64,000 bases of DNA, from positions 22,382,001 through 22,446,000 of the forward strand of contig OZ365118.1 of NCBI GenBank assembly GCA_977030845.1, given 5' to 3'. Numbering within the stretch: position 1 is the stretch's first letter; each line of letters opens with the position of its first letter. Position numbers and translations under genes: made by a program. This DNA is from Fimbriosthenelais zetlandica. Taxonomy: Eukaryota. Positions 311 to 30,960 of this stretch are shown here, in pieces. Below the pieces are notes generated by a model. The model had not been told where the DNA came from. It did no database searches and saw only the letters and a list, made by a program, of their open reading frames with translations.

Positions 311-917
311 ATGGCAGAGAGGTTACCAGAAGGGGTGAGAGTAGAGAGTGAGGTCGGGGGCATGGCAGGGAGAATGGTAGGACAGACAGAAGGAAGGACA
401 GAAGGGATGAGAGTAGAGAGTGAGGTCGGGGGCATGGCAGGGAGAATGGTAGGACAGACAGAAGGAAGGACAGAAGGGATGAGAATAGACAGTGAGGTCG
501 GGGGCAGGGCAGGGAGAATGGTAGGACAGACAGAAGGAAGGACAGAAGGGATGAGAGTAGAGAGTGAGGTCGGGGGCATGGCAGGGAGAATGGTAGGACA
601 GACAGAAGGAAAGACAGGAGGGATGAGAGTAGAGAGTGAGGTCGGGGGCATGGCAGGGAGAATGGTAGGACAGACAGAAGGAAAGACAGGAGGGATGAGA
701 GTAGAGAGTGAGGTCGGGGGCATGGCAGGGAGAATGGTAGGACAGACAGAAGGAAGGACAGGAGGGGTGAGAAGAGAGAATGAGGAGCGAGGCCGGGTGC
801 ATTTTGTGCCTAACATAGAGCAGAAAAAGAGGAGGACACCTAAATGGATCCTCATCTTCCTGTGCGGCATCGTCCTCTTCATTATAGCTATCGTGGTCCT
901 GGCACTCACACTCACCG
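311..917 (+). CDS. First coding exon: cytoplasmic repeats plus signal-anchor TM helix
   Basis: KKRRTPK followed by WILIFLCGIVLFIIAIVVLALTLT (positive-inside rule gives N-in type II topology); donor ACC G|gtaatc at 918. Confidence 0.85.
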
Positions 918-3900
918 GTAATCTTTATAATTATTTTATACATTTGAGTCTCCTTCAGTTTGAACAATGAAAGAAATCAAACAATTATGAGCAAAATCGA
1001 ATCATCGTCATACAGTAGAATGATCATTTAATTTCCAGGCAAGGATAAGACGGTATCTACCGGTGGAACGGGTGCAGCTCTTACAGGGACAGGCACCTTG
1101 CCAGGTGCACAGCCTCCTCCCCTCCAATTCCCAGTTTTACCAAGTGTCACTAGAACAAACCAGCAAACCCAAGGTAAGACAATGTCATGAGACATTTCTA
1201 TCTTGTGACATTCTGACACAGGCATAAAAAGGGGATTCACCCCTACTGCTGGCACATTAACTAACTGAGCTCGCTTTTATTTCAGCTACTTTCCTCTTGG
1301 AATGTGAAGAACCACGGGATAGCAATGGTAACATCGCCAAGGTTAGTGACCTTTGTTGGTTGGACGATTCTACACTCATGCTAACTCAAAAGTCTGCTCA
1401 ACGTGTCATCCACATCCACATCGAGTGGGAGAACTTGGCATGTACACACGATATAGTCGACTCAGGCTTCACACCTGAAAGTATCACCTGCTCACATTCA
1501 AGAGAAATCTATGTGACAGACAGCGACAAAGTGGTGAGAATCTACAAGCATCACGACAAAACAACCTGGATACCTCAAAGTGCAGCAGACATCCATTCTG
1601 TACATGTTATAGGTGATCGTTACTTTGTCACAGCTGAGACAGGACCAGTCTACGTTTATAACAAGGCCAGACAGTTGGAGAGGACTCTGCCCATTGGTAC
1701 TGGCCAGTGTAAATTCGGCGATGTGCATATCAGAGAAGACGGGCTCTTTTTCGCTATTAATAGTGACCACCAACTTGTCTTATATAACCTGGTAGATTCT
1801 AACCTCGTTACAGTCGGGGGAAGTGGATCATCAGATGGTGATTTCAATTTACCTATAGGGGCTACAGCTGGCCCAGGTAGAACCATAATGGTCACTGATT
1901 TTATTAACAACAGAATCAGTGTCTTCTCAGATGATGGTCAATTCCTACAGCAGTTGCAGCAAGTTGGCTCTGGCACCACTTTCAGCCAGCCCTGGGCTAT
2001 TGCCTACCGACCATATTCAGGCAGTTACACCTCTGGACATCTGGTTCTCTCTCATCTTCAATACATCAGATTTTATGAGGTATCTACTACAAGTCCATCT
2101 CTACCAGGGACAGGCACCTTGCCAGGTGCACAGCCTCCTCCCCTCCAATTCCCAGTTTTACCAAGTATCACCAGAACAAACCAGCAAACCCAAGGTAACA
2201 CATACTTTCTCCCTTAACTCATAAATACTGCTTAATTAAATCATATTGCCCATCAAGGCTACTGCTGGTACATTATCTAACTGAGCTCACTTTTATTTCA
2301 GCTACTTTCCTCTTGGAATGTGAAGAACCTCGGGATAGCAATGGTAACATCGCCAAGGTTAGTGACCTTTGTTGGTTGGACGATTCTACACTCATGCTAA
2401 CTCAAAAGTCTGCTCAACGTGTCATCCATATCCACATCGAGTGGGAGAACTTGGCATGTACACACGATATAGTCGACTCAGGCTTCACACCTGAAAGTAT
2501 CACCTGCTCACATTCAAGAGAAATCTATGTAACAGACAGCGACAAAGTGGTGAGAATCTACAAGCATCACAACAAAACAACCTGGATACCTCAAAGTGCA
2601 GCAGACATCCATTCTGTACATGTTATAGGTGATCGTTACTTTGTCACAGCTGAGACAGGACCAGTCTACGTTTATAACAAGGCCAGACAGTTGGAGAGGA
2701 CTCTGCCCATTGGTACTGGCAAGTTCAACTTGAGAGATGTCCACATCAGAGAGGACGGCCTCTTTTTTGCCACTACTAGTGATGGCCATCAACTTGTCTT
2801 ATATAACCTGGTAGATTCTAACCTCGTCACAGCTGGAGGACTTGGATCATCAGATGGTGATTTCAATTCACCTATAGGGGCTACAGCTGGCCCAGGTAGA
2901 ACCATAATGGTGAGTGACTATAACAACAACAGAATCAGTGTCTTCTCAGATGATGGTCAATTCCTACAGCAGTTGCAGCAAGTTGGTTCTGGCACCACTT
3001 TCAGCCAGCCCTGGGCTATTGCCTACCGACCATATTCAGGCAGTTACACCTCTGGACATCTGGTTCTCTCTCATCTTCAATACATCAGATTTTATGAGGT
3101 ATTTACTACAAGTCCATCTCTACCATGGACAGGCACCTTGCCAGGTGCACAGCCTCCTCCCCTCCAATTCCCAGTCTTACCAAGTATCACCAGAACAAAC
3201 CAGCAAACCCAAGGTAAGACATACTTTCTCCCTTCACTCATAAATACTGCTTAATTAAATCATACTGCCCATCAAGTGGGGGCATTGGGGCTCCTGGAAG
3301 GCTACTGCTGGCACATTAACTGAGCTCGCTTTTATTTCAGCTACTTTCCTCTTGGAATGTGAAGAACCTCGGGATAGCAATGGTAACATCGCAAAGGTTA
3401 GTGACCTTTGTTGGTTGGATGATTCTACACTCATGCTAACTCAAAAGTCTGCTCAACGTGTCATCCACATCCACATCGAGTGGGAGAACTTGGCATGTAC
3501 ACACGATATAGTCGACTCAGGCTTCACACCTGAAAGTATCACCTGCTCACATTCAAGAGAAATCTATGTGACAGACAGCGACAAAGTGGTGAGAATCTAC
3601 AAACATCACAACAAAACAACCTGGATACCTCAAAGTGCAGCAGACATCCATTCTGTACATGTTATAGGTGATCGTTACTTTGTCACAGCTGAGACAGGAC
3701 CAGTCTACGTTTATAACAAGGCCAGACAGTTGGAGAGGACTCTGCCCATTGGTACTGGCCAGTTCAACTTGAGAGATGTCCACATCAGAGAGGACGGCCT
3801 CTTTTTCGCCACTACTAGTGATGGCCATCAACTTGTCTTATATAACCTGGTAGATTCTAACCTCGTCACAGCTGGAGGACTTGGATCATCAGATGGTGAT

Positions 3901-6900
3901 TTCAATTCACCTATAGGGGCTACAGCTGGCCCAGGTAGAACCATAATGGTGAGTGACTATAACAACAACAGAATCAGTGTCTTCTCAGATGATGGCCAAT
4001 TCCTACAGCAGTTGCAGCAAGTTGGCTCTGGCACCACTTTCAGCCAGCCCTGGGCTATTGCCTACCGACCATATTCAGGCAGTTACACCTCTGGACATCT
4101 AGTTCTCTCTCATCTTCAATACATCAGATTTTATGAGGTATCTACTACAAGTCCATCTCTACCAGGGACAGGCACATTGCCAGGTGCACAGCCTCCTCCC
4201 CTCCAATTCCCAGTTTTACCAAGTATCACCAGAACAAACCAGCAAACCCAAGGTAAGACATACTTTCTCCCTTAACTCATAAATACTGCTTAATAAAATC
4301 ATATTGCCCACCAAGGCTACTTCTGGCACATTATCTAACTGACCTCACTTTTATTTCAGCTACTTTCCTCTTGGAATGTGAGGAACCTCGGGATAGCAAT
4401 GGTAACATCGCCAAGGTTAGTGACCTTTGTTGGTTGGACGATTCTACACTCATGCTAACTCAAAAGTCTGCTCAACGTGTCATCCACATCCACATCGAGT
4501 GGGAGAACTTGGCATGTACACACGATATAGTCGACTCAGGCTTCACACCTGAAAGTATCACCTGCTCACATTCAAGAGAAATCTATGTGACAGACAGCGA
4601 CAAAGTGGTGAGAATCTACAAACATCACAACAAAACAACCTGGATACCTCAAAGTGCAGCAGACATCCATTCTGTACATGTTATAGGTGATCGTTACTTT
4701 GTCACAGCTGAGACAGGACCAGTCTACGTTTATAACAAGGCCAGACAGTTGGAGAGGACTCTGCCCATTGGTACTGGCAAGTTCAACTTGAGAGATGTCC
4801 ACATCAGAGAGGACGGCCTCTTTTTCGCCACTACTAGTGATGGCCATCAACTTGTCTTATATAACCTGGTAGATTCTAACCTCGTCACAGCTGGAGGACT
4901 TGGATCATCAGATGGTGATTTCAATTCACCTATAGGGGCTACAGCTGGCCCAGGTAGAACCATAATGGTGAGTGACTATAACAACAACAGAATCAGTGTC
5001 TTCTCAGATGATGGTCAATTCCTACAGCAGTTGCAGCAAGTTGGCTCTGGCGCCACTTTCAGCCAGCCCTGGGCTATTGCCTACCGACCATATTCAGGCA
5101 GTTACACCTCTGGACATCTGGTTCTCTCTCATCTTCAATACATCAGATTTTATGAGGTATTTACTACAAGTCCATTTCTACCATGGACAGGCACCTTGCC
5201 AGGTGCACAGCCTCCTCCCCTCCAATTCCCAGTCTTACCAAGTATCACCAGAACAAACCAGCAAACCAAAGGTAAGACATACTTTCTCCCTTCTCTCATA
5301 AATACTGCTTAATTAAATCATATTGCTCATCAAGTGGGGGCATTGGGGCCCCGCTCCTGGAAGGCTACTGCTGGCACATTATCTAACTGAGCTCGCTTTT
5401 ATTTCAGCTACTTTCCTCTTGGAATGTGAAGAACCTCGGGATAGCAATGGTAACATCGCCAAGGTTAGTGACCTTTGTTGGTTGGACGATTCTACACTCA
5501 TGCTAACTCAAAAGTCTGCTCAACGTGTCATCCACATCCACATCGAGTGGGAGAACTTGGCATGTACACACGATATAGTCGACTCAGGCTTCACACCTGA
5601 AAGTATCACCTGCTCACATTCAAGAGAAATCTATGTGACAGACAGCGACAAAGTGGTGAGAATCTACAAACATCACAACAAAACAACCTGGATACCTCAA
5701 AGTGCAGCAGACATCCATTCTGTACATGTTATAGGTGATCGTTACTTTGTCACAGCTGAGACAGGACCAGTCTACGTTTATAACAAGGCCAGACAGTTGG
5801 AGAGGACTCTGCCCATTGGTACTGGCCAGTTCAACTTGAGAGATGTCCACATCAGAGAGGACGGCCTCTTTTTCGCCACTACTAGTGATGGCCATCAACT
5901 TGTCTTATATAACCTGGTAGATTCTAACCTCGTCACAGCTGGAGGACTTGGATCATCAGATGGTGATTTCAATTCACCTATAGGGGCTACAGCTGGCCCA
6001 GGTAGAACCATAATGGTGAGTGACTATAACAACAACAGAATCAGTGTCTTCTCAGATGATGGTCAATTCCTACAGCAGTTGCAGCAAGTTGGCTCTGGCG
6101 CCACTTTCAGCCAGCCCTGGGCTATTGCCTACCGACCATATTCAGGCAGTTACACCTCTGGACATCTGGTTCTCTCTCATCTTCAATACATCAGATTTTA
6201 TGAGGTATCTACTACAAGTCCATCTCTACCAGGGACAGGCACCTTGCCAGGTGCACAGCCTCCTCCCCTCCAATTCCCAGTTTTACCAAGTATCACCAGA
6301 ACAAACCAGCAAACCCAAGGTAAGACATACTTTCTCCCTTCACTCATAAATACTGCTTAATTAAATCATATTGCCCATCAAGTGGGGGCATTGGGGCTCC
6401 TGGAAGGCTGCTGCTGGCACATCATCTAACTGAGCTCGCTTTTATTTCAGCTACTTTCCTCTTGGAATGTGAAGAACCTCGGGATAGCAATGGTAACATC
6501 GCCAAGGTTAGTGACCTTTGTTGGTTGGACGATTCTACACTCATGCTAACTCAAAAGTCTGCTCAACGTGTCATCCACATCCACATCGAGTGGGAGAACT
6601 TGGCATGTACACACGATATAGTCGACTCAGGCTTCACACCTGAAAGTATCACCTGCTCACATTCAAGAGAAATCTATGTGACAGACAGCGACAAAGTGGT
6701 GAGAATCTACAAACATCATAACAAAACAACCTGGATACCTCAAAGTGCAGCAGACATCCATTCTGTACATGTTATAGGTGATCGTTACTTTGTCACAGCT
6801 GAGACAGGACCAGTCTACGTTTATAACAAGGCCAGACAGTTGGAGAGGACTCTGCCCATTGGTACTGGCCAGTTCAACTTGAGAGATGTCCACATCAGAG

Positions 6901-9900
6901 AGGACGGCCTCTTCTTTGCCACTACTAGTGATGGCCATCAACTTGTCTTATATAACCTGGTAGATTCTAACCTCGTGACAGCTGGAGGACTTGGATCATC
7001 AGATGGTGATTTCAATTCACCTATAGGGGCTACAGCTGGCCCAGGTAGAACCATAATGGTGAGTGACTATAACAACAACAGAATCAGTGTCTTCTCAGAT
7101 GATGGTCAATTCCTACAGCAGTTGCAGCAAATTGGCTCTGGCGCCACTTTCAGCCAGCCCTGGGCTATTGCCTACCGACCATATTCAGGCAGTTACACCT
7201 CTGGACATCTGGTTCTCTCTCATCTTCAATACATCAGATTTTATGAGGTATTTACTACAAGTCCATCTCTACCAGGGACAGGCACCTTGCCAGGTGCACA
7301 GCCTCCTCCCCTCCAATTCCCAGTTTTACCAAGTATCACCAGAACAAACCAGCTAACCCAAGGTAAGACATACTTTCTCCCTTCACTCATAAATACTGCT
7401 TAATTAAATCATATTGCCCATCAAGTGGGGGTATTGGGGCTCCTGGAAGGCTACTGCGGGCACATTAACTGAGCTAGCTTTTATTTCAGCTACTTTCCTC
7501 TTGGAATGTGAAGAACCTCGGGATAGCAATGGTAACATCGCCAAGGTTAGTGACCTTTGTTGGTTGGACGATTCTACACTCATGCTAACTCAAAAGTCTG
7601 CTCAACGTGTCATCCACATCCACATCGAGTGGGAGAACTTGGCATGTACACACGATATAGTCGACTCAGGCTTCACACCTGAAAGTATCACCTGCTCACA
7701 TTCAAGAGAAATCTATGTGACAGATAGCGACAAAGTGGTGAGAATCTACAAACATCACAACAAAACAACCTGGATACCTCAAAGTGCAGCAGACATCCAT
7801 TCTGTACATGTTATAGGTGATCGTTACTTTGTCACAGCTGAGACAGGACCAGTCTACGTTTATAACAAGGCCAGACAGTTGGAGAGGACTCTGCCCATTG
7901 GTACTGGCCAGTTCAACTTGAGAGATGTCCACATCAGAGAGGACGGCCTCTTCTTTGCCACTACTAGTGATGGCCATCAACTTGTCTTATATAACCTGGC
8001 AGATTCTAACCTCGTCACAGCTGGAGGACTTGGATCATCAGATGGTGATTTCAATTCACCTATAGGGGCTACAGCTGGCCCAGGAAGAACCATAATGGTG
8101 AGTGACTATAACAACAACAGAATCAGTGTCTTCTCAGATGATGGTCAATTCCTACAGCAGTTGCAGCAAGTTGGCTCTGGCGCCACTTTCAGCCAGCCCT
8201 GGGCTATTGCCTACCGACCATATTCAGGCAGTTACACCTCTGGACATCTGGTTCTCTCTCATCTTCAATACATCAGATTTTATGAGGTATCTACTACAAG
8301 TCCATCTCTACCAGGGACAGGCACCTTGCCAGGTGCACAGCCTCCTACCCTCCAATTCCCAGTTTTACCAAGTATCACCAGAACGAACCAGCAAACCCAA
8401 GGCAAGACATACTTTCTCCCTTCACTCATAAATACTGCTTAATTAAATCATATTGCCCATCAATTTGGGGCATTGGGGCTCCTGGAAGGCTGCTGCTGGC
8501 ACATTATCTAACTGATCTCGCTTTTATTTCAGCTACTTTCCTCTTGGAATGTGAAGAACCTCGGGATAGCAATGGTAACATCGCAAAGGTTAGTGACCTT
8601 TGTTGGTTGGACGATTCTACACTCATGCTAACTCAAAAGTCTGCTCAACGTGTCATCCATATCCACATCGAGTGGGAGAACTTGGCATGTACACACGATA
8701 TAGTCGACTCAGGCTTCACACCTGAAAGTATCACCTGCTCACATTCAAGAGAAATCTATGTGACAGACAGCGACAAAGTGGTGAGAATCTACAAACATCA
8801 CGACAAAACAACCTGGATACCTCAAAGTGCAGCAGACATCCATTCTGTACATGTTATAGGTGATCGTTACTTTGTCACAGCTGAGACAGGACCAGTCTAC
8901 GTTTATAACAAGGCCAGACAGTTGGAGACGACTCTGCCCATTGGTACTGGCCAGTTCAACTTGAGAGATGTCCACATCAGAGAGGACGGCCTCTTCTTTG
9001 CCACTACTAGTGATGGCCATCAACTTGTCTTATATAACCTGGTAGATTCTAACCTCGTCACAGCCGGAGGACTTGGATCATCAGATGGTGATTTCAATTC
9101 ACCTATAGGGGCTACAGCTGGCCCAGGTAGAACCATAATGGTGAGTGACTATAACAACAACAGAATCAGTGTCTTCTCAGATGATGGTCAATTCCTACAG
9201 CAGTTGCAGCAAGTTGGCTCTGGCACCACTTTCAGCCAGCCCTGGGCTATTGCCTACCGACCATATTCAGGCAGTTACACCTCTGGACATCTGGTTCTCT
9301 CTCATCTTCAATACATCAGGTTTTATGAGGTATCTACAACTGGTGCCTCTGCAGCTCTCCCTGGGCCAGGTACCGGACTAGGTAAAACGCCAATAACTAG
9401 TACAACAATGCCAGGTAAGACTCTAATGAATAGCACAACCAAAATGCCAAGCACGACTGCAATGCCAAGCACGACTCCAATGCAAAGCACAACTGCAATA
9501 CCTAGCACAACTGCAATGCCAAGCACCAATCCAATGCCTAGCACCAGTCCAATGCTTAGCACAACTCCAATGCTAAGCACCACTACAAAGCCAAGCACCA
9601 GTCCAATGCCTAGCACCAGTCCAATGCCAAGCACCACTCCAATGCCTGGCACCATCCCAATGCTTAGTACAGCTTCTATGTCTAATGCAACCTTAATGCC
9701 AAATACAACTGCAATGCCTAGCACAACTGCAATGCCTAACACAACTGCAATGCCTAATACAACTGCAATTCCTATTACAATGTCAATGCCAAATACAACC
9801 TTAATGCCAAATACAACTGCAATGCCTAGCACAACTGCAATGCCTAACACAACTGCAATTCCTATTACAATGTCAATGCCAAATACAACCTCAATGCCAA

Positions 9901-12900
9901 ATACAACTGCAATGCCTACTACAATCTCAATGCCCAATATAACCTCAATGCCAAATATAACCTCAATGCCAAATACAACTGCAATGCCTACTACAATCTC
10001 AATGCCTAATACAACCTCAATGCCCAATATAACCTCGATGCCCAATATAACCTCAATGCCAAATACAACTGCAATGCCTACTACAATCTCAATGCCCAAT
10101 ATAACCTCAATGCCAAATATAACCTCAATGCCAAATACAACTGCAATGCCTACTACAATCTCAATGCCTAATACAACCTCAATGCCCAATATAACCTCGA
10201 TGCCCAATATAACCTCAATGCCAAATACAACAGGAATGCCTAATACAACAGCAATGCCTAATACAACTGCAATGCCTACTACAATCTCAATGCCCAATAT
10301 AACCTCAATGCCTAATACAACTGCAATGCCTACTACAATTTCAATGCCCAATATAACCTCAATGCCTAATACAACTGCAATGCCTACTACAATTTCAATG
10401 CCAAATACAACTGCAATGCCTAATACAACTGCAATGCCTAATACAACTGCAATGCCTACTACAATCTCAATGGCCAATATAACCTCAATGCCAAATATAA
10501 CCGCAATGCCTAATACAACTGCAATGCCTAATACAACTGCAATGCCTACTACAATCTCAATGCCAAATATAACAGCAATGCCTAATACAACTTCAATGCC
10601 TACAACAACCTCAATGCCCAATATAACCTCAATGCCAAATATAACCGCAATGCCTAATACAACTGCAATGCCTACTACAATCTCAATGCCCAATATAACC
10701 TCAATGCCAAATACAACTGCAATGCCTACTACAATCTCAATGCCAAATTCAACTGCAATGCCTACTACAATCTCAATGCCCAATATAACCTCAATGCCAA
10801 ATATAACCTCCATGTCAAATACAACTGCAATGCCTACTACAATCTCAATGCCCAATATAACCTCAATGCCAAATACAACTGCAATGCCTACTACAATCTC
10901 AATGCCCAATATAACCTCAATGCCAAATACAACTGCAATGCCTACTACAATCTCAATGCCAAATTCAACTGCAATGCCTACTACAATCTCAATGCCCAAT
11001 ATAACCTCAATGCCAAATATAACCTCCATGTCAAATACAACTGCAATGCCTACTACAATCTCAATGCCCAATATAACCTCAATGCCAAATACAACTGCAA
11101 TGCCTAATACAACTGCAATGCCTACTACAATCTCAATGCCAAATACAACTGCAATGCCTACTACAATCTCAATGCCAAATACAACTGCAATGCCTACTAC
11201 AATCTCAATGCCCAATATAACCTCAATGCCAAATATGACCTCCATATCAAATACAACTGCAATGCCTACTACAATCTCAATGCCCAATATAACCTCAATG
11301 CCAAATACAACTGCAATGCCTACTACAATCTCAATGCCCAATATAACCTCAATGCCTAATACAACTGCAATGCCTAATACAACCTCAATGCCTAATACAA
11401 CCTCAATGCCAAATACAACTGCAATGCCTACTACAATCTCAATGGCCAATATAACCTCAATGCCAAATAAAACCGCAATGCCTAATACAACCGCAATGCC
11501 TAATACAACCGCAATGCCTAATACAACCTCAATGCCCAATACAACTGCAATGCCTACTACAATCTCAATGCCCAATATAACCTCAATGCCAAATATAACC
11601 GCAATGCCTAATACAACCGCAATGCCTAATACAACAGCAATGCCTAATACAACTGCAATGCCTACTACAATCTCAATGTCAAATACAACTACAATGCCTA
11701 ATACAACCTCAATGCCAAATACAACTGCAATGCCTACTACAATCTCAATGCCCAATATAACCTCGATGCCAAATACAACTGCAATGCCTACTACAATCTC
11801 AATGCCCAATATAACCTCAATGCCCAATATAACCTCAATGCCTAATGCAACTGCAATGCCTACTACAATCTCAATGCCAAATATAACAGCAATGCCAAAT
11901 ACAACTGCAATGCCTAATACAACCTCAATGCCAAATACAACTGCAATGCCTACTACAATCTCAATGCCCAATATAACCTCAATGCCAAATACAACTGCAA
12001 TGCCTACTACAATCTCAATGCCCAATATAACCTCAATGCCAAATACAACTGCAATGCCTACTACAATCTCAATGCCCAATATAACCTCAATGCCCAATAT
12101 AACCTCAATGCCTAATGCAACTGCAATGCCTACTACAATCACAATGCCAAATACAACTGCAATGCCTAATACAACCTCAATGCCCAATATAACCTCAATG
12201 CCAAATACAACAGGAATGCCAAATACAACTGCAATGCCTGCTACAATTTCAATGCCAAATATAACCTCAATGCCAAATACAACTGCAATGCCTACTACAA
12301 TCTCAATGCCCAATATAACCTCAATGCCAAATACAACGGCAATGCCTACTACAATCTCAATGCCCAATATAACCTCAATGCCTAATACAACTGCAATGCC
12401 TACTACAATCTCAATGCCAAATACAACTGCAATGTCTAATACAACTGCAATGTCTACTACAATCTCAATGCCCAATATAACCTCAATGCCTAATGCAACT
12501 GCAATGCCTACTACAATCTCAATGCCAAATATAACAGCAATGCCAAATACAACTGCAATGCCTAATACAACCTCAATGCCAAATACAACTGCAATGCCTA
12601 CTACAATCTCAATGCCCAATATAACCTCGATGCCAAATACAACTGCAATGCCTACTACAATCTCAATGCCCAATATAACCTCAATGCCCAATATAACCTC
12701 AATGCCTAATGCAACTGCAATGCCTACTACAATCTCAATGCCAAATATAACAGCAATGCCAAATACAACTGCAATGCCTAATACAACCTCAATGCCAAAT
12801 ACAACTGCAATGCCTACTACAATCTCAATGCCCAATATAACCTCAATGCCAAATACAACTGCAATGCCTACTACAATCTCAATGCCCAATATAACCTCAA

Positions 12901-15900: not shown

Positions 15901-18900
15901 CACATACTTTCTCCCTTCACTCATAAATACTGCTTAATTAAATCATATTGCCCATCAAGTGGGGACATTGGGGCTCCTGGAAGGCTGCTGCTGGCACATT
16001 ATCTAACTGAGCTTACTTTTATTTCAGCTACTTTCCTCTTGGAATGTGAAGAACCTCGGGATAGCAATGGTAACATCGCCAAGGTTAGTGACCTTTGTTG
16101 GTTGGACGATTCTACACTCATGCTAACTCAAAAGTCTGCTCAACGTGTCATCCACATCCACATCGAGTGGGAGAACTTGGCATGTACACACGATATAGTC
16201 GACTCAGGCTTCACACCTGAAAGTATCACCTGCTCACATTCAAGAGAAATCTATGTGACAGACAGCGACAAAGTGGTGAGAATCTACAAGCATCACAACA
16301 AAACAACCTGGATACCTCAAAGTGCAGCAGACATCCATTCTGTACATGTTATAGGTGATCGTTACTTTGTCACAGCTGAGACAGGACCAGTCTACGTTTA
16401 TAACAAGGCCAGACAGTTGGAGAGGACTCTGCCCATTGGTACTGGCCAGTTCAACTTGAGAGATGTCCACATCAGAGAGGACGGCCTCTTCTTTGCCACT
16501 ACTAGTGATGGCCATCAACTTGTCTTATATAACCTGGTAGATTCTAACCTCGTCACAGCTGGAGGACTTGGATCATCAGATGGTGATTTCAATTCACCTA
16601 TAGGGGCTACAGCTGGCCCAGGTAGAACCATAATGGTGAGTGACTATAACAACAACAGAATCAGTGTCTTCTCAGATGATGGCCAATTCCTACAGCAGTT
16701 GCAGCAAGTTGGCTCTGGCACCACTTTCAGCCAGCCCTGGGCTATTGCCTACCGACCATATTCAGGCAGTTACACCTCTGGACATCTGGTTCTCTCTCAT
16801 CTTCAATACATCAGATTTTATGAGGTATCTACTACAAGTCCATCTCTACCTGCACAGCCTCCTCCCCTCCAATTCCAAGTTTTACCAAGTATCACCAGAA
16901 CAAACCAGCAAACCCAAGGTAGGACCTACTTTCTCCCTTCACTCATAAATACTGCATAAATAAATCATAGTGACCATCAAGGCTACTGCTGGTACATTAT
17001 CTAACTGAGCTCACTTTTATTTCAGCTACTTTCCTCTTGGAATGTGAAGAACCTCGGGATAGCAATGGTAACATCGCCAAGGTTAGTGACCTTTGTTGGT
17101 TGGACGATTCTACACTCATGCTAACTCAAAAGTCTGCTCAACGTGTCATCCATATCCACATCGAGTGGGAGAACTTGGCATGTACACACGATATAGTCGA
17201 CTCAGGCTTCACACCTGAAAGTATCACCTGCTCACATTCAAGAGAAATCTATGTGACAGACAGCGACAAAGTGGTGAGAATCTACAAACATCACGACAAA
17301 ACAACCTGGATACCTCAAAGTGCAGCAGACATCCATTCTGTACATGTTATAGGTGATCGTTACTTTGTCACAGCTGAGACAGGACCAGTCTACGTTTATA
17401 ACAAGGCCAGACAGTTGGAGAGGACTCTGCCCATTGGTACTGGCCAGTTCAACTTGAGAGATGTCCACATCAGAGAGGACGGCCTCTTCTTTGCCACTAC
17501 TAGTAATGGCCATCAACTTGTCTTATATAACCTAGTAGATTCTAACCTCGTCACAGCTGGAGGACTTGGATCATCAGATGGTGATTTCAATTCACCTATA
17601 GGGGCTACAGCTGGCCCAGGTAGAACCATAATGGTGAGTGACTATAACAACAACAGAATCAGTGTCTTCTCAGATGATGGTCAATTCCTACAGCAGTTGC
17701 CGCAAGTTGGTTCTGGCGCCACTTTCAGCCAGCCCTGGGCTATTGCCTACCGACCATATTCAGGCAGTTACACCTCTGGACATCTGGTTCTCTCTCATCT
17801 TCAATACATCAGATTTTATGAGGTATCTACTACAAGTCCATCTCTACCTGCACAGCCTCCTCCCCTCCAATTCCAAGTTTTACCAAGTATCACCAGAACA
17901 AATCAGCAAACCCAAGGTAACACATACTTTCTCCCTTCACTCATAAATACTGCTTAATTAAATCATAGTGACCATCAAGCGGGGGCATTGGGGCTCCTGG
18001 AAGGCTGCTGCTGGCACATTATCTAACTGAGCTCACTTTTATTTCAGCTACTTTCCTCTTGGAATGTGAAGAACCTCGGGATAGCAATGGTAACATCGCC
18101 AAGGTTAGTGACCTTTGTTGGTTGGACGATTCTACACTCATGCTGACTCAAAAGTCTGCTCAACGTGTCATCCATATCCACATCGAGTGGGAGAACTTGG
18201 CATGTACACACGATATAGTCGACTCAGGCTTCACACCTGAAAGTATCACCTGCTCACATTCAAGAGAAATCTATGTGACAGACAGCGACAAAGTGGTGAG
18301 AATCTACAAGCATCACAACAAAACAACCTGGATACCTCAAAGTGCAGCAGACATCCATTCTGTACATGTTATAGGTGATCGTTACTTTGTCACAGCTGAG
18401 ACAGGACCAGTCTACGTTTATAACAAGGCCAGACAGTTGGAGAGGACTCTGCCCATTGGTACTGGCCAGTTCAACTTGAGAGATGTCCACATCAGAGAGG
18501 ACGGCCTCTTCTTTGCCACTACTAGTGATGGCCATCAACTTGTCTTATATAACCTGGTAGATTCTAACCTCGTCACAGCTGGAGGACTTGGATCATCAGA
18601 TGGTGATTTCAATTCACCTATAGGGGCTACAGCTGGCCCAGGTAGAACCATAATGGTGAGTGACTATAACAACAACAGAATCAGTGTCTTCTCAGATGAT
18701 GGTCAATTCCTACAGCAGTTGCAGCAAGTTGGCTCTGGCACCACTTTCAGCCAGCCCTGGGCTATTGCCTACCGACCATATTCAGGCAGTTACACCTCTG
18801 GACATCTAGTTCTCTCTCATCTTCAATACATCAGATTTTATGAGGTATCTACTACAAGTCCATCTCTACCTGCACAGCCTCCTCCCCTCCAATTCCAAGT

Positions 18901-21900
18901 TTTACCAAGTATCACCAGAACAAATCAGCAAACCCAAGGTAACACATACTTTCTCCTTTCACTCATAAATACTGCTTAATTAAATCATAGTGACCATCAA
19001 GCGGGGGCATTGGGGCTCCTGGAAGGCTGCTGCTGGCACATTATCTAACTGAGCTCACTTTTATTTCAGCTACTTTCCTCTTGGAATGTGAAGAACCTAG
19101 GGATAGCAATGGTAACATCGCCAAGGTTAGTGACCTTTGTTGGTTGGACGATTCTACACTCATGCTGACTCAAAAGTCTGCTCAACGTGTCATCCATATC
19201 CACATCGAGTGGGAGAACTTGGCATGTACACACGATATAGTCGACTCAGGCTTCACACCTGAAAGTATCACCTGCTCACATTCAAGAGAAATCTATGTGA
19301 CAGACAGCGACAAAGTGGTGAGAATCTACAAGCATCACAACAAAACAACCTGGATACCTCAAAGTGCAGCAGACATCCATTCTGTACATGTTATAGGTGA
19401 TCGTTACTTTGTCACAGCTGAGACAGGACCAGTCTACGTTTATAACAAGGCCAGACAGTTGGAGAGGACTCTGCCCATTGGTACTGGCCAGTTCAACTTG
19501 AGAGATGTCCACATCAGAGAGGACGGCCTCTTCTTTGCCACTACTAGTGATGGCCATCAACTTGTCTTATATAACCTGGTAGATTCTAACCTCGTCACAG
19601 CTGGAGGACTTGGATCATCAGATGGTGATTTCAATTCACCTATAGGGGCTACAGCTGGCCCAGGTAGAACCATAATGGTGAGTGACTATAACAACAACAG
19701 AATCAGTGTCTTCTCAGATGATGGTCAATTCCTACAGCAGTTGCAGCAAGTTGACTCTGGCACCACTTTCAGCCGGCCCTGGGCTATTGCCTACCGACCA
19801 TATTCAGGCAGTTACACCTCTGGACATTTGGTTCTCTCTCATCTTCAATACATCAGATTTTATGAGGTATCTACTACAAGTCCATCTCTACCAGGGACAG
19901 GCACCTTGCCAGGTGCACAGCCTCCTCCCCTCCAATTCCCAGTTTTACCAAGTATCACCAGAACAAACCAGCAAACCCAAGGTAAGACATACTTTCTCCC
20001 TTCACTCATAAATACTCCTTAATTAAATCATATTGCCCATCAAGGCTACTGCTGGCACATTAACTAACTGAGCTCACTTTTATTTCAGCTTCTTTCCTCT
20101 TGGAATGTGAAGAACCTCGGGATAGCAATGGTAACATCGCCAAGGTTAGTGACCTTTGTTGGTTGGACGATTCTACACTCATGCTAACTCAAAAGTCTGC
20201 TCAACGTGTCATCCATATCCACATCGAGTGGGAGAACTTGGCATGTACACACGATATAGTCGACTCAGGCTTCACACCTGAAAGTATCACCTGCTCACAT
20301 TCAAGAGAAATCTATGTGACAGACAGCGACAAAGTGGTGAGAATCTACAAGCATCACAACAAAACAACCTGGATACCTCAAAGTGCAGCAGACATCCATT
20401 CTGTACATGTTATAGGTGATCGTTACTTTGTCACAGCTGAGACAGGACCAGTCTACGTTTATAACAAGGCCAGACAGTTGGAGACGACTCTGCCCATTGG
20501 TACTGGCCAGTTCAACTTGAGAGATGTCCACATCAGAGAGGACGGCCTCTTCTTTGCCACTACTAGTGATGGCCATCAACTTGTCTTATATAACCTGGTA
20601 GATTCTAACCTCGTCACAGCTGGAGGACTTGGATCATCAGATGGTGATTTCAATTCACCTATAGGGGCTACAGCTGGCCCAGGTAGAACCATAATGGTGA
20701 GTGACTATAACAACAACAGAATCAGTGTCTTCTCAGATGATGGCCAATTCCTACAGCAGTTGCAGCAAGTTGGCTCTGGCGCCACTTTCAGCCAGCCCTG
20801 GGCTATTGCCTACCGACCATATTCAGGCAGTTACACCTCTGGACATCTGGTTCTCTCTCATCTTCAATACATCAGATTTTATGAGGTATCTACTACAAGT
20901 CCATCTCTACCTGCACAGCCTCCTCCCCTCCAATTCCAAGTTTTACCAAGTATCACCAGAACAAATCAGCAAACCCAAGGTAACACATACTTTCTCCCTT
21001 CACTCATAAATACTGCTTAATTAAATCATGTTGCCTATCAAGGCTACTGCTGACAAATTAACTAACTGAGCTCGCTTTTATTTCAGCTACTTTACTCTTG
21101 GAATGTGAAGAACCTCGGGATAGCAATGGTAACATCGCCAAGGTTAGTGACCTTTGTTGGTTGGACGATTCTACACTCATGCTAACTCAAAAGTCTGCTC
21201 AACGTGTCATCCACATCCACATCGAGTGGGAGAACTTGGCATGTACACACGATATAGTCGACTCAGGCTTCACCCCTGAAAGTATCACCTGCTCACATTC
21301 AAGAGAAATCTATGTGACAGACAGCGACAAAGTGGTGAGAATCTACAAGCATCACAACAAAACAACCTGGATACCTCAAAGTGCAGCAGACATCCATTCT
21401 GTACATGTTATAGGTGATCGTTACTTTGTCACAGCTGAGACAGGACCAGTCTACGTTTATAACAAGGCCAGACAGTTGGAGAGGACTCTGCCCATTGGTA
21501 CTGGCCAGTTCAACTTGAGAGATGTCCACATCAGAGAGGACGGCCTCTTCTTTGCCACTACTAGTGATGGCCATCAACTTGTCTTATATAACCTGGTAGA
21601 TTCTAACCTCGTCACAGCTGGAGGACTTGGATCATCAGATGGTGATTTCAATTCACCTATAGGGGCTACAGGTGGCCCAGGTAGAACCATAATGGTGAGT
21701 GACTATAACAACAACAGAATCAGTGTCTTCTCAGATGATGGTCAATTCCTACAGCAGTTGCAGCAAGTTGGCTCTGGCACCACTTTCAGCCAGCCCTGGG
21801 CTATTGCCTACCGACCATATTCAGGCAGTTACACCTCTGGACATCTGGTTCTCTCTCATCTTCAATACATCAGATTTTATGAGGTATCTACTACAAGTCC

Positions 21901-24900
21901 ATCTCTACCTGCACAGCCTCCTCCCCTCCAATTCCAAGTTTTACCAAGTATCACCAGAACAAATCAGCAAACCCAAGGTAAGACCTACTTTCTCCCTTCA
22001 CTCATAAATACTGCTTAATTAAATCATAGTGACCATCAAGCGGGGGCATTGGGGCTCCTGGAAGGCTGCTGCTGGCACATTATCTAACTGAGCTCACTTT
22101 TATTTCAGCTACTTTCCTCTTGGAATGTGAAGAACCTCGGGATAGCAATGGTAACATCGCCAAGGTTAGTGACCTTTGTTGGTTGGACGATTCTACACTC
22201 ATGCTAACTCAAAAGTCTGCTCAACGTGTCATCCACATCCACATCGAGTGGGAGAATTTGGCATGTACACACGATATAGTCGACTCAGGCTTCACACCTG
22301 AAAGTATCACCTGCTCACATTCAAGAGAAATCTATGTGACAGACAGCGACAAAGTGGTGAGAATCTACAAGCATCACAACAAAACAACCTGGATACCTCA
22401 AAGTGCAGCAGACATCCATTCTGTACATGTTATAGGTGATCGTTACTTTGTCACAGCTGAGACAGGACCAGTCTACGTTTATAACAAGGCCAGACAGTTG
22501 GAGAGGACTCTGCCCATTGGTACTGGCCAGTTCAACTTGAGAGATGTCCACATCAGAGAGGACGGCCTCTTCTTTGCCACTACTAGTGATGGCCATCAAC
22601 TTGTCTTATATAACCTGGTAGATTCTAACCTCGTCACAGCTGGAGGACTTGGATCATCAGATGGTGATTTCAATTCACCTATAGGGGCTACAGCTGGCCC
22701 AGGTAGAACCATAATGGTGAGTGACTATAACAACAACAGAATCAGTGTCTTCTCAGATGATGGTCAATTCCTACAGCAGTTGCAGCAAGTTGACTCTGGC
22801 ACCACTTTCAGCCAGCCCTGGGCTATTGCCTACCGACCATATTCAGGCAGTTACACCTCTGGACATTTGGTTCTCTCTCATCTTCAATACATCAGATTTT
22901 ATGAGGTATCTACTACAAGTCCATCTCTACCAGGGACAGGCACCTTGCCAGGTGCACAGCCTCCTCCCCTCCAATTCCCAGTTTTACCAAGTATCACCAG
23001 AACAAACCAGCAAACCCAAGGTAAGACATACTTTCTCCCTTCACTCATAAATACTCCTTAATTAAATCATATTGCCCATCAAGGCTACTGCTGGCACATT
23101 AACTAACTGAGCTCACTTTTATTTCAGCTTCTTTCCTCTTGGAATGTGAAGAACCTCGGGATAGCAATGGTAACATCGCCAAGGTTAGTGACCTTTGTTG
23201 GTTGGACGATTCTACACTCATGCTAACTCAAAAGTCTGCTCAACGTGTCATCCATATCCACATCGAGTGGGAGAACTTGGCATGTACACACGATATAGTC
23301 GACTCAGGCTTCACACCTGAAAGTATCACCTGCTCACATTCAAGAGAAATCTATGTGACAGACAGCGACAAAGTGGTGAGAATCTACAAGCATCACAACA
23401 AAACAACCTGGATACCTCAAAGTGCAGCAGACATCCATTCTGTACATGTTATAGGTGATCGTTACTTTGTCACAGCTGAGACAGGACCAGTCTACGTTTA
23501 TAACAAGGCCAGACAGTTGGAGACGACTCTGCCCATTGGTACTGGCCAGTTCAACTTGAGAGATGTCCACATCAGAGAGGACGGCCTCTTCTTTGCCACT
23601 ACTAGTGATGGCCATCAACTTGTCTTATATAACCTGGTAGATTCTAACCTCGTCACAGCTGGAGGACTTGGATCATCAGATGGTGATTTCAATTCACCTA
23701 TAGGGGCTACAGCTGGCCCAGGTAGAACCATAATGGTGAGTGACTATAACAACAACAGAATCAGTGTCTTCTCAGATGATGGCCAATTCCTACAGCAGTT
23801 GCAGCAAGTTGGTTCTGGCGCCACTTTCAGCCAGCCCTGGGCTATTGCCTACCGACCATATTCAGGCAGTTACACCTCTGGACATCTGGTTCTCTCTCAT
23901 CTTCAATACATCAGATTTTATGAGGTATCTACTACAAGTCCATCTCTACCTGCACAGCCTCCTCCCCTCCAATTCCAAGTTTTACCAAGTATCACCAGAA
24001 CAAATCAGCAAACCCAAGGTAACACATACTTTCTCCCTTCACTCATAAATACTGCTTAATTAAATCATATTGCCCATCAAGTGGGGACATTGGGGCTCCT
24101 GGAAGGATACTGCTGGCACATTATCTAACTGAGCTCGCTTTTATTTCAGCTTCTTTCCTCTTGGAATGTGAAGAACCTAGGGATAGCAATGGTAACATCG
24201 CCAAGGTTAGTGACCTTTGTTGGTTGGACGATTCTACACTCATGCTAACTCAAAAGTCTGCTCAACGTGTCATCCACATCCACATCGAGTGGGAGAACTT
24301 GGCATGTACACACGATATAGTCGACTCAGGCTTCACACCTGAAAGTATCACCTGCTCACATTCAAGAGAAATCTATGTGACAGACAGCGACAAAGTGGTG
24401 AGAATCTACAAGCATCACAACAAAACAACCTGGATACCTCAAAGTGCAGCAGACATCCATTCTGTACATGTTATAGGTGATCGTTACTTTGTCACAGCTG
24501 AGACAGGACCAGTCTACGTTTATAACAAGGCCAGACAGTTGGAGAGGACTCTGCCCATTGGTACTGGCCAGTTCAACTTGAGAGATGTCCACATCAGAGA
24601 GGACGGCCTCTTCTTTGCCACTACTAGTGATGGCCATCAACTTGTCTTATATAACCTGGTAGATTCTAACCTTGTCACAGCTGGAGGACTTGGATCATCA
24701 GATGGTGATTTCAATTCACCTATAGGGGCTACAGCTGGCCCAGGTAGAACCATAATGGTGAGTGACTATAACAACAACAGAATCAGTGTCTTCGCAGATG
24801 ATGGCCAATTCCTACAGCAGTTGCAGCAAGTTGGCTCTGGCGCCACTTTCAGCCAGCCCTGGGCTATTGCCTACCGACCATATTCAGGCAGTTACACCTC

Positions 24901-27900
24901 TGGACATCTGGTTCTCTCTCATCTTCAATACATCAGATTTTATGAGGTATCTACTACAAGTCCATCTCTACCTGCACAGCCTCCTCCCCTCCAATTCCAA
25001 GTTTTACCAAGTATCACCAGAACAAACCAGCAAACCCAAGGTAAGACATACTTTCTCCCTTCACTCATAAATACTGCATAATTAAATCATAGTGACCATC
25101 AAGGCTACTTCTGGCACATTAACTAACTGAGCTCGCTTTTATTTCAGCTACTTTCCTCTTGGAATGTGAAGAACCTCGGGATAGCAATGGTAACATCGCC
25201 AAGGTTAGTGACCTTTGTTGGTTGGACGATTCTACACTCATGCTAACTCAAAAGTCTGCTCAACGTGTCATCCACATCCACATCGAGTGGGAGAACTTGG
25301 CATGTACACACGATATAGTCGACTCAGGCTTCACACCTGAAAGTATCACCTGCTCACATTCAAGAGAAATCTATGTGACAGACAGCGACAAAGTGGTGAG
25401 AATCTACAAGCATCACAACAAAACAACCTGGATACCTCAAAGTGCAGCAGACATCCATTCTGTACATGTTATAGGTGATCGGTACTTTGTCACAGCTGAG
25501 ACAGGACCAGTCTACGTTTATAACAAGGCCAGACAGTTGGAGAGGACTCTGCCCATTGGTACTGGCCAGTTCAACTTGAGAGATGTCCACATCAGAGAGG
25601 ACGGCCTCTTCTTTGCCACTACTAGTGATGGCCATCAACTTGTCTTATATAACCTGGTAGATTCTAACCTCGTCACAGCTGGAGGACTTGGATCATCAGA
25701 TGGTGATTTCAATTCACCTATAGGGGCTACAGCTGGCCCAGGTAGAACCATAATGGTGAGTGACTATAACAACAACAGAATCAGTGTCTTCTCAGATGAT
25801 GGTCAATTCCTACAGCAGTTGCAGCAAGTTGGCTCTGGCACCACTTTCAGCCAGCCCTGGGCTATTGCCTACCGACCATATTCAGGCAGTTACACCTCTG
25901 GACATTTGGTTCTCTCTCATCTTCAATACATCAGATTTTATGAGGTATCTACTACAAGTCCATCTCTACCTGCACAGCCTCCTCCCCTCCAATTCCCAGT
26001 TTTACCAAGTATCACCAGAACAAACCAGCAAACCCAAGGTAAGACATACTTTCTCCCTTCACTCATAAATACTGCTTAATTAAATCATGTTGCCCATCAA
26101 GTGGGGGCATTGGGGCTCCTGGAAGGCTGCTGCTGGCACATTATCTAACTTAGCTCACTTTTATTTCAGCTACTTTCCTCTTGGAATGTGAAGAACCTCG
26201 GGATAGCAATGGTAACATCGCCAAGGTTAGTGATCTTTGTTGGTTGGACGATTCTACACTCATGCTAACTCAAAAGTCTGCTCAACGTGTCATCCACATC
26301 CACATCGAGTGGGAGAACTTGGCATGTACACACGATATAGTCGACTCAGGCTTCACACCCGAAAGTATCACATGCTCACATTCAAGAGAAATCTATGTGA
26401 CAGACAGCGACAAAGTGGTGAGAATCTACAAGCATCACAACAAAACAACCTGGATACCTCAAAGTGCAGCAGACATCCATTCTGTACATGTTATAGGTGA
26501 TCGTTACTTTGTCACAGCTGAGACAGGACCAGTCTACGTTTATAACAAGGCCAGACAGTTGGAGAGGACTCTGCCCATTGGTACTGGCCAGTTCAACTTG
26601 AGAGATGTCCACATCAGAGAGGACGGCCTCTTTTTCGCCACTACTAGTAATGGCCATCAACTTGTCTTATATAACCTGGTAGATTCTAACCTCGTCACAG
26701 CTGGAGGACTTGGATCATCAGATGGTGATTTCAATTCACCTATAGGGGCTACAGGTGGCCCAGGTAGAACCATAATGGTGAGTGACTATAACAACAACAG
26801 AATCAGTGTCTTCTCAGATGATGGCCAATTCCTACAGCAGTTGCAGCAAGTTGGCTCTGGCGCTACTTTCAGCCAGCCCTGGGCTATTGCCTACCGACCA
26901 TATTCAGGCAGTTACACCTCTGGACATCTGGTTCTCTCTCATCTTCAATACATCAGATTTTATGAGGTATCTACTACAAGTCAATCTCTACCAGGGACAG
27001 GCACATTGCCAGGTGCACAGCCTCCTCCCCTCCAATTCCCAGTTTTACCAAGTATCACCAGAACAAACCAGCAAACCCAAGGTAAGACATACTTTCTCCC
27101 TTCACTCATAAATACTGCTTAATTAAATCATATTGCTCATCAAGTGGGGACATTGGGCCTCCTGGAAGGCTACTGCTGGCACATTAACTAACTGAGCTCG
27201 CTTTCATTTCAGCTAAATTCCTGTTTGAATGTGAAGAACCGCGGGATAGCAATGGACATATCGCGACAGTTAACGATCTTTGTTGGTTGGACGATTCTAC
27301 ACTCATGCTAACTCAAAAGTCTGCTCAACGTGTCATCCACATCCACATCGAGTGGGAGAACTTGGCATGTACACACGATATAGTCGACTCAGGCTTCACA
27401 CCTGAAAGTATCACCTGCTCACATTCAAGAGAAATCTATGTGACAGACAGCGACAAAGTGGTGAGAATCTACAAGCATCACAACAAAACAACCTGGATAC
27501 CTCAAAGTGCAGCAGACATCCATTCTGTACATGTTATAGGTGATCGTTACTTTGTCACAGCTGAGACAGGACCAGTCTACGTTTATAACAAGGCCAGACA
27601 GTTGGAGAAGACTCTGCCCATTGGTACTGGCCAGTTCAACTTGAGAGATGTCCACATCAGAGAGGACGGCCTCTTTTTCGCCACTACTAGTAATGGCCAT
27701 CAACTTGTCTTATATAACCTGGTAGATTCTAACCTTGTCGCAGTAGGGGGGCGTGGAAGTTCAGATGGTGATTTCAATTTACCTATAGGGGCTACAGCGG
27801 GCCCCAGTAGGACCATACTTGTGAGTGATTTCATAAACAACAGAATCAGTGTCTTCTCAGATGATGGTCAATTCCTACACCAATTAAACACAGATCGTTC

Positions 27901-28027
27901 CGGAGCATATTTCCCCCAGCCCTGGGCTATTGCCTACCGACCATATTCAGGCAGTTACACCTCTGGACATCTGGTTCTCTCTCATCTTCAATACATCAGA
28001 TTTTATCATTTATCAGATGACGTCTGA
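311..28027 (+). CDS. Giant type II membrane protein with 20 NHL beta-propeller exons plus mucin (paralog 1), ~8,330 aa if all 23 coding exons are used
   Basis: Hand-built exons, all phase 1: 311-917, 1039-1173, 1286-2194, 2302-3213, 3341-4252, 4360-5271, 5408-6319, 6451-7362, 7490-8401, 8533-15600, 15774-15896, 16028-16918, 17026-17916, 18048-18938, 19070-19981, 20089-20979, 21087-21977, 22109-23020, 23128-24018, 24150-25040, 25148-26038, 26170-27081, 27213-28027. Internal exon lengths are multiples of 3 and no stops occur. The ATG at 311 has an in-frame upstream stop. Confidence 0.8.
337..780 (+). repeat. 72-bp coding repeat (RVESEVGGMAGRMVGQTEGRTEGM) x6
   Basis: Units start at 337, 409, 481, 553, 625, 697. 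Confidence 0.95.
1039..1173 (+). CDS. Linker exon (KDKTVSTGGTGAALTGTGTLPGAQPPPLQFPVLPSVTRTNQQTQ)
   Basis: tttccag acceptor, caag|gtaaga donor, 135 nt open frame; a 135-nt homologous exon lies at 31275-31409. Confidence 0.85.
1286..8401 (+). CDS. Array of 7 tandem NHL-propeller exons (909-912 nt) separated by 107-136 nt introns
   Basis: NHL-like motifs GSSDGDFNSPIGAT, IMVSDYNNNRISVFSDDGQFL, FSQPWAIA; most introns carry a (C/T)TAAC branch point and ttttatttcag acceptor. Confidence 0.85.
8533..15600 (+). CDS. NHL propeller 8 fused to mucin domain (7,068-nt exon)
   Basis: Continuous ORF with a phase-1 donor CCA A|gtatgt at 15601; the ORF-track tail beyond 15600 (CSLCVLCIC...) reads as intron. 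Confidence 0.7.
9440..15600 (+). repeat. 18-bp coding repeat (MPNTTA/MPTTIS/MPNITS), roughly 340 units
   Basis: Hexapeptide period; synonymous third-position variation (cca/cct/ccc, act/aca/acc) with the frame preserved. Confidence 0.95.
15774..15896 (+). CDS. Second, diverged linker exon (AVTIAAVDTGGGVSPPDTGQQAPLQFPALPTVSRTNQQTQ)
   Basis: tctcttatacag acceptor, caag|gtaaca donor, 123 nt, phase 1-1; 3' half is homologous to exon 1039-1173. Confidence 0.7.
16028..27081 (+). CDS. Array of 11 tandem NHL-propeller exons (891 or 912 nt)
   Basis: Same splice signals and motifs as the first array; 8 of 11 lack 21 nt (GTGTLPG). Confidence 0.85.
27213..28027 (+). CDS. Terminal, divergent NHL-propeller exon with stop
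   Basis: ttcatttcag|ctaaattcc acceptor; KFLFECEEPRDSNGHIATVNDL ... RFYHLSDDV*; no linker tail. Confidence 0.85.
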
Positions 28028-28474
28028 TAGCAAGTATGTTCCTCCCTCTCCCACTTCACTGCCAAACATGTAGCAACACAAATAACGCTACTGACACCAC
28101 AGACATTCTTCATAATGTTCCTCATGTAATAACCATGGCAGAGTGCCTCCTAATTATTGTAAAGCCTTTATAATGCTACTCAATTCAAATTGTTGTCTTA
28201 TATGATATGTGATGAAAATAAGAATGGTAATAGGAACCATGTTAACCGATTTATTATTCATGTACTTCTAATCATGTTACTCTACAAAGTAATGTAACAT
28301 AACATTTACCAGAAATACACATAATTACGATGACGTAAAGATATATAAAGTATGTGATGATCTTGATCTATACACTCAATAACCCATTGAACTCACCAGA
28401 AATGACATATATTTTGGTCATCTTGTAAATTCAAGTTTGATTTTGTATATATGCTATTTTTCATAATGTACATT

Positions 28475-30900: not shown

Positions 30901-30960
30901 TCTTAAGGAAAGACAGAAGGAAGGACAGGAGGGGTAAGAGGAGACAGTGAAGTCGGGGGC

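Follow-up and report, generated by a model that had tools for sequence, protein, structure and literature searches.

What do twenty open stretches, each about 300 codons long and set about 1 kb apart on one strand of the Fimbriosthenelais zetlandica genome, encode? The stretches lie at 1286-28027 (+) of the window, by which is meant the whole 64,000 nucleotides (nt) analyzed here (assembly GCA_977030845.1, contig OZ365118.1, positions 22,382,001 to 22,446,000), and they belong to a locus, gene 1 (311-28027, +), that had been picked out by a sequence-only reading made without database searches. The answer that we favor, with moderate confidence, is that gene 1 is real, intact, and of animal origin and that its product is a giant type II (N terminus in, C terminus out) cell-surface glycoprotein displaying binding modules like beads on a string. 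Four things about it are established: the exon chain, the folding of the repeated unit as an NHL beta-propeller, constraint on the coding sequence, and the existence of a paralogue nearby (gene 2).

To begin with the chain itself, gene 1 was rebuilt as 23 exons that join into 24,993 nt and encode 8,330 amino acids (aa) with zero internal stops and a single terminal stop codon at 28025-28027. A chain of one transmembrane exon and 22 in-phase exons, estimated at ~8,330 aa, had been proposed earlier, and the rebuilt model matches it to the residue. The twenty propeller exons, numbered U01 to U20, are each open over 297-304 codons in a single fixed phase, and a chance origin is not an issue. The features of gene 1, with a slash marking exon borders here and below, are the following.

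311-917, forward strand: exon 1, with the ATG start, the predicted cytoplasmic part, and the signal-anchor helix (~845-913); donor G/GTAATC, phase 1
1039-1173, forward strand: linker exon (KDKTVSTGGTGAALTGTGTLPGAQPPPLQFPVLPSVTRTNQQTQ), the 3' part of which recurs at the end of each propeller exon
1286-8401, forward strand: propeller exons U01-U07, 909-912 nt each, with introns of 107-136 nt and a GC donor after U07
8533-9320, forward strand: propeller U08, the opening part of a giant exon (8533-15600)
9321-15600, forward strand: mucin region, ~2,092 aa; donor A/GTATGT, phase 1
15774-15896, forward strand: small post-mucin linker exon, with a firm donor and an uncertain acceptor
16028-27081, forward strand: propeller exons U09-U19, 891 or 912 nt each, with introns of 107 or 131 nt
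27213-28027, forward strand: terminal propeller exon U20, of a divergent type; stop at 28025-28027
28028-28700, forward strand: probable 3' untranslated region, with two AATAAA signals at 28475-28486

How well defined are the exon borders? All 22 introns are phase 1, with lengths of 107-173 nt, and 21 of them have GT-AG borders. The remaining one, after unit 7, is GC-AG, so that the earlier description of the splice signals as intact holds except for the lack of a GT donor at that position. The sequence there (8402-8403) reads AAG/GCAAGA, a consensus GC donor and the only one in gene 1. The propeller exons start at acceptors 1286, 2302, 3341, 4360, 5408, 6451, 7490, 8533, 16028, and 17026 (first ten) and 18048, 19070, 20089, 21087, 22109, 23128, 24150, 25148, 26170, and 27213 (last ten). 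Their 5' borders all read ...TTATTTCAG/CT(A/T)CTTTCC, and their 3' borders are CCCAAG/GTA, apart from the last exon and the eighth, which continues into the mucin (8533-15600).

What is the repeated unit? It had been called an NHL propeller from its letters alone, with a search for PF01436 and a structure prediction of one unit proposed as checks. Both of these now agree on that identity, as do HMMER, Foldseek, and VIA-align. In Pfam, PF01436 scores 20.9 bits for U01 and 22.8 bits for U20 against a cutoff of 20, a marginal result in which one of six blades is recognized; the canonical NHL motif is retained in blade 5 (VSDYNNNRISVF). AlphaFold, supplied with a 15-sequence alignment, models unit 3 with a predicted local distance difference test (pLDDT) score of 92 and a predicted template modeling (pTM) score of 0.89, as 24 strands in six four-stranded blades, which is the build of a six-bladed NHL propeller (four-stranded blades, ~260-280 aa). 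With this model as the Foldseek query, the NHL domains of TRIM71, Thin, TRIM2, TRIM3, and Brat rank first (E ~1e-12; template modeling [TM] scores of 0.75-0.80), and VIA-align gives Z scores of 27.3 for the TRIM3 NHL domain, 24.9 for the extracellular PknD sensor, and 23.0 for PAL. Feature and shape searches of the ESM atlas concur with an NHL fold. At the sequence level, homology to known NHL proteins was established with HMMER; run exhaustively against 1.84 billion representative proteins, it gave 18,268 matches at E ≤ 1e-3, and those matches that were checked all carry PF01436. A catalytic reading of the unit (PAL or lactonase-like) was rejected; the family-invariant residues are the structural NHL motif and the cysteines and give no pointer to an active site, although this was not tested in depth.

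Which proteins carry the closest relatives of this domain? Among the 18,268 matches, none exceeds 40% identity except for short matches to single NHL repeats. Matches to the whole domain are limited to a handful, namely P0085 and its cluster and five proteins that stem from sequencing runs ERR14368245-49 (P0072, P0083, P0123, P0128, and P0192). These relatives are 31-38% identical over the entire domain and share its start (xTFLxEC), a DLCWLD motif, and four conserved cysteines; in their genomic contigs, the domain starts directly 3' of a 3' splice site, the position that it has in gene 1. P0085, a secreted protein from a metatranscriptome, has an N-terminal signal peptide, cysteine-rich chitin-binding CBM_14 modules, and one C-terminal propeller, which argues that this type of propeller works outside the cell. 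Judged by sequence, then, the gene 1 propeller falls into a rare NHL subfamily that is extracellular and keeps four cysteines conserved. All six relatives have a single, C-terminal propeller versus the 20 of gene 1, and neither a tandem array nor a mucin is present in the short contigs available.

Is there any other protein built like gene 1? At least two full copies of the subfamily domain would be expected to score ~280 bits or more, and no protein with two or more copies was found among the 1.84 billion representatives; the sole representative at that score level is the bacterial P0006, which lacks the subfamily signature. No close homologue or annotated copy turned up in word-index searches that used one unit, a 2,820-aa open reading frame (ORF) of gene 2, or a family profile as the query, and a search of the full-text literature on tandem, extracellular, or secreted NHL propellers found nothing relevant. 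That the domain layout of gene 1 has no eukaryotic counterpart in the searched databases is thus supported. In bacteria, the situation is different. The top-scoring HMMER matches are giant proteins in which as many as 40 stretches align, although the alignments cover no more than the canonical NHL repeats (query ~135-250) and reach 30-35% identity. The two giants that were examined are bacterial in type and combine NHL propellers with Bact_surface_Ig-like domains. Like gene 1, the metagenomic P0006 (6,129 aa) and P0007 (2,653 aa) carry many NHL propellers in one large, probably surface-exposed chain. Unlike gene 1, the bacterial giants have uninterrupted genes and no mucin, Ig-like domains stand between their propellers, which are not near-identical copies, and none shows the xTFLxEC/Cys signature. 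The statement that NHL propellers occur once per chain therefore fits the eukaryotic proteins found but not these giants, and the uniqueness first claimed for gene 1 has to be confined to eukaryotes within the databases searched. Gene 1 is a new architecture assembled from known parts. A prokaryotic counterpart of the multi-NHL architecture was also seen as a locus, on a metagenomic contig (L007; ENA ERZ25072730) where genes of bacterial type for large NHL-propeller/Ig-like surface proteins, including P0007, lie next to each other.

On which side of the membrane would the propellers lie? Exon 1 has a hydrophilic N terminus with no signal peptide, 6.4 copies of a 24-aa repeat, and a hydrophobic anchor (WILIFLCGIVLFIIAIVVLALTL), a 23-residue helix with KKRRTPK on its N-terminal side. 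One internal hydrophobic helix, positive charges on its N side, and no cleavable signal peptide are the features of a type II (signal-anchor) protein. By the positive-inside rule, the N terminus is predicted to be cytosolic and everything downstream of the anchor extracellular. The propellers are read as extracellular on the basis of this anchor, the four conserved cysteines, the mucin, and the relative P0085, and the type II layout put forward earlier is supported. Each unit has 4 cysteines (5 in unit 1), and N-K-T occurs at residue 90 in 17 of the 20 units, in agreement with the 4-5 cysteines and usual N-K-T sequon first noted for the propellers. Except across the mucin, the linkers between propellers are 35-42 residues long and rich in Pro, Thr, and Gln.

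The mucin of gene 1 is 2,092 aa long and consists of 28% Thr, 16% Met, 16% Pro, 12% Asn, and 10% Ser, with 244 N-x-S/T N-glycosylation sequons and a DNA period of 18/36/54 nt. A long Pro/Thr/Ser-rich tandem-repeat region along with one transmembrane anchor is the arrangement of a membrane-tethered mucin; a SEA domain was not seen by Pfam in the gene 1 protein. The chain is predicted to be glycosylated. Met is unusually frequent in the mucins of both genes (9321-15600 and, in gene 2, 32340-39190), accounting for 16% of the gene 1 mucin. Both are built of PNTT/PNIT-A/S-M hexapeptides, with the result that they have potential N-glycosylation sequons about every 6-9 residues.

Does the transmembrane exon truly belong with the propellers? 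The best support here for their joining, and an independent one, comes from the sequence of gene 2, which lies downstream on the same strand.

30961-40014, forward strand: gene 2, modeled at 2,932 aa, with exons 30961-31150 (transmembrane), 31275-31409 (linker), and 31541-40014

The third exon, a single intronless stretch of 8.5 kb, encodes two propellers, U21 and the terminal U22, on either side of a mucin of ~2,290 aa. Across 526 nt, exon 1 of the two genes is 79% identical and has its donor at the same codon, and the splice positions and phases of the transmembrane and linker exons of gene 2 are those of gene 1. As the order of transmembrane segment, linker, and propeller and their phase are kept in both genes, the transmembrane exon probably belongs to the propeller chain. 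The first propeller of gene 2 is closest to U01, and the last is closest to U20; in addition, the end of the U20 exon with the 3' untranslated region (27902-28700) is 89% identical to the end of the paralogue (39886-40700). The family had been thought to extend over 311-28027. The array is indeed there, but two further propellers lie in the paralogue. The gene 2 layout (transmembrane segment, linker, propeller, mucin, propeller) is probably the ancestral state of the family, to judge from the sequences compared. Gene 2 has only about one copy of the 24-aa cytoplasmic repeat, and its 5' end may have been truncated through insertion of a retroelement. A reverse-transcriptase fragment (30740-30905, +; ...YADDLVLFAASVTGMNKLLNICEEFG...) adjoins the point where the homology between the 5' parts of the two genes ends.

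How have the copies evolved? Whether repeat types or the two genes are compared, ratios of nonsynonymous to synonymous divergence (Ka/Ks) are 0.23-0.52, with Ks reaching 0.35; on these sequence comparisons, the translated product is under purifying selection, unlike a duplication made in assembly or a dead array. The repeats had been described as divergent at the ends and homogenized internally, and unit comparisons bear this out while placing a boundary within the unit. Over nt 67-396 of the propeller exon (blades 1-3), unit types differ at 0-7 of 330 positions in all 22 copies and both genes. Over nt 397-793, 19-74 of 397 sites differ between unit types, giving three types with 5-19% divergence, and the type-specific residues occupy strands and loops of blades 4-6. 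As read from this pattern, the identity of the N-terminal halves is a sharply bounded gene conversion tract, and concerted evolution is mosaic.

How might such a gene have arisen, and what might it do? Gene 1 would descend from a simpler ancestor of the gene 2 type (transmembrane segment, linker, propeller, mucin, propeller) and would have grown by tandem amplification of a unit made up of linker tail, intron, and propeller exon, with gene conversion holding the propeller copies alike. Its product would have a cytoplasmic head of ~178 aa made of the 24-aa repeats, one signal-anchor helix, and an ectodomain of eight NHL propellers, a Thr/Met/Pro/Asn mucin spacer of ~2,100 aa, and twelve further propellers. 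Such a chain would display one binding module twenty times on a glycosylated stalk, bead on a string, and could bind a repetitive extracellular ligand through avidity. Candidates are the matrix, a glycan-bearing surface, a microbe, or a partner cell, and the chitin-binding domains of the relatives hint, by analogy, at matrix or glycan surfaces. Alternatively, the chain could cross-link an apical glycocalyx or mucus. A membrane-tethered, heavily glycosylated filament with avidity-based binding is the best-supported functional reading.

What speaks against one giant chain? Several points do. Gene 1 is missing from the protein collections searched and therefore has no independent annotation, and we infer the linkage of all 23 exons within one mRNA from the DNA. 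If the GC donor after U07 is unused, the reading frame stops 13 codons into the intron. The acceptor of the exon 3' of the mucin is ambiguous, with twelve in-phase AGs and candidates at 15738-15831; 15774, which has the best pyrimidine tract, is the preferred acceptor and a best guess, while the donor of this small exon at 15896 is firm. Finally, the symmetric phase-1 exons can all be skipped, so actual products may be shorter. A tentative but real possibility is accordingly that the locus is genuine but the 8,330-aa chain is not its main product, with shorter isoforms of variable propeller number made instead, by skipping of phase-1 cassettes, by failure of the GC donor at 8402, or by retention of the post-mucin intron. 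The exons from the linker through U19 are all multiples of 3 nt, with all introns in phase 1, and the frame is open through 15601-15872, encoding ...MCSLCVLCICPVICMLFVFFYMCSPCFVCLVAM TTEGDDRKF..., such that retention would add 33 aa of hydrophobic sequence and a short charged tail before a stop at 15870-15872. On the other hand, the GC donor fits the consensus AAG/GCAAG, the hydrophobic read-through is TG-rich low-complexity sequence that is absent in the paralogue (where the mucin leads straight into a propeller), and the 12 downstream propellers are as constrained as the first 8, hence translated in some product. A receptor of variable valency, in which alternative splicing of the symmetric cassettes sets the number and type of propellers borne on the mucin stalk for gamete, self/non-self, or microbe recognition, is unlikely; under it, conversion would fix the N-terminal half in all 22 copies while the C-terminal half stays type specific (first, internal, terminal). 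If true, it would be a new kind of receptor made from a domain whose other known animal examples are mostly cytosolic modules that bind RNA or protein.

Could the array instead be an artifact, or a relic in the making? Units that are 97-99.5% identical over ~1 kb are hard to assemble, and an over-expanded or mis-joined array would conceal a true gene with far fewer propellers. This danger had been recognized in the sequence-only reading as one that could overturn it, and we consider it very unlikely, since the coding exons are real and constrained. The 18 complete genomic units include no identical pair, every pair being set apart by indels and 5-28 substitutions; exons of 891 and 912 nt and introns of 107, 127, 131, and 136 nt follow one another along the array in no regular order; there is no frameshift across the 25 kb of gene 1 and no run of N in the window; and variant codons of the internal units are biased toward synonymous changes (28 versus 15 nonsynonymous), unlike sequencing error. 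As for a young, nonfunctional array of amplified exons that have yet to decay, the introns are as similar as the exons, and much of the identity must therefore come from recent duplication or conversion rather than from selection. The older comparisons (U01 with U20, gene 1 with gene 2; Ks 0.07-0.35) nonetheless keep Ka/Ks at 0.23-0.52, and with a 25-kb frame open and all splice sites retained, this explanation is very unlikely. A receptor for gamete, self/non-self, or symbiont recognition resembling abalone VERL or sea urchin EBR1 would be a special case of the binding model. As in those two proteins, the ectodomain is giant, glycosylated, and made of tandem repeats, which diverge at the ends and are homogenized internally, and the family is confined to a few lineages. 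The parallel, drawn in the sequence-only reading, fares poorly all the same: VERL is made of ZP-N repeats and EBR1 of CUB, TSP1, and hyalin domains, none of which is found in gene 1 by Pfam, the Ka/Ks range gives no sign of positive selection or rapid evolution, and divergent edge repeats are generic for tandem arrays homogenized by unequal exchange. Such a role is quite unlikely, the analogy drawing only on features, concerted internal repeats included, that homogenized tandem arrays have in common.

How does the favored product, a giant anchored chain of propellers, compare with other NHL proteins? The nearest solved folds are those of the TRIM-NHL proteins (TRIM2, TRIM3, TRIM71/LIN-41, Brat, and Thin), over ~265 aa with Z scores of 25-27, TM scores of 0.75-0.80, and 16-19% identity. 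These are cytosolic, with one propeller behind a RING/B-box/coiled-coil region, and bind RNA or protein, whereas the gene 1 propeller has four conserved cysteines and a sequon and is present 20 times in a chain with a membrane anchor and a mucin; Pfam found no RING, B-box, or coiled coil in exon 1 or the linker, so the parts of a TRIM-NHL E3 ligase are not there. Extracellular NHL-type propellers are familiar from the NHL domain of the teneurins, which are type II proteins, and from the PAL domain of peptidylglycine amidating monooxygenase; in either case there is one propeller, set among different domains. Gene 1 resembles the teneurins in having an NHL-type propeller outside the cell, as predicted, and a type II anchor. 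It is not one of them, given that the teneurin family PF25021 (TEN_NHL) has no Pfam match at E ≤ 1 and that the model contains no EGF or YD repeats. PAL (3fvz) aligns to the unit with a Z score of 23 at 9% identity, and no catalytic site was identified in the gene 1 unit.

Why does the locus matter? If one chain is made, its 20 beta-propellers would be, to our knowledge, among the largest arrays in any animal protein; LRP2 has 8 YWTD propellers. Most familiar as part of the cytosolic TRIM-NHL regulators, the NHL fold is here predicted at the cell surface in a disulfide-bearing, glycosylated version, from an extracellular subfamily that is small and unannotated, with its handful of relatives among 1.84 billion representatives. 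The 22 copies in two genes also offer a clean natural example of exon amplification combined with mosaic gene conversion, in a kind of locus that gene predictors readily miss or split.

Several other features were noted within gene 1 and its surroundings. Along 15601-15872 (+), the mucin frame stays open and specifies 33 hydrophobic residues rich in Cys, Val, and Phe, then a charged tail and a stop. The stretch is probably TG-rich intron DNA, although an isoform that retains the intron, and with it a second membrane segment, could exist. A split into two genes at the mucin, with the ORF passing through this stretch into a second transmembrane segment, was judged unlikely because the stretch is TG-rich and of low complexity, is absent in the paralogue, and follows a consensus donor at 15601. 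Minus-strand ORFs at 154-915, 323-967, and 9323-15640 were rejected as repeat by-products, low-complexity repeats staying open in several frames. Upstream of gene 1, a perfect 30-bp tandem repeat (4.4 copies) occupies 1-131, and a run of short GTACGGTGTATYCT repeats lies just 5' of the gene at 170-262.

The neighbors of gene 1 and gene 2 in the window are a BTB-BACK gene, two rhodopsin-type G protein-coupled receptor ORFs, an OATP exon, and fragments of long interspersed nuclear elements, a set that marks the DNA as animal; an atlas search with the BTB protein matched a mixture of phyla. Those with coordinates, together with the clean minisatellites of the region, are listed below.

41060-41743: minisatellite, 34 copies of 20 bp
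45641-45892: minisatellite, 8 copies of 32 bp
48015-50204, forward strand: single-exon BTB-BACK ORF, 729 aa, its N-terminal part overlapping a 21-bp tandem repeat (48436-48760)
50671-51211: minisatellite, 17 copies of 32 bp
55483-56622 and 57243-58295, reverse strand: single-exon rhodopsin-family G protein-coupled receptor ORFs, 379 and 350 aa

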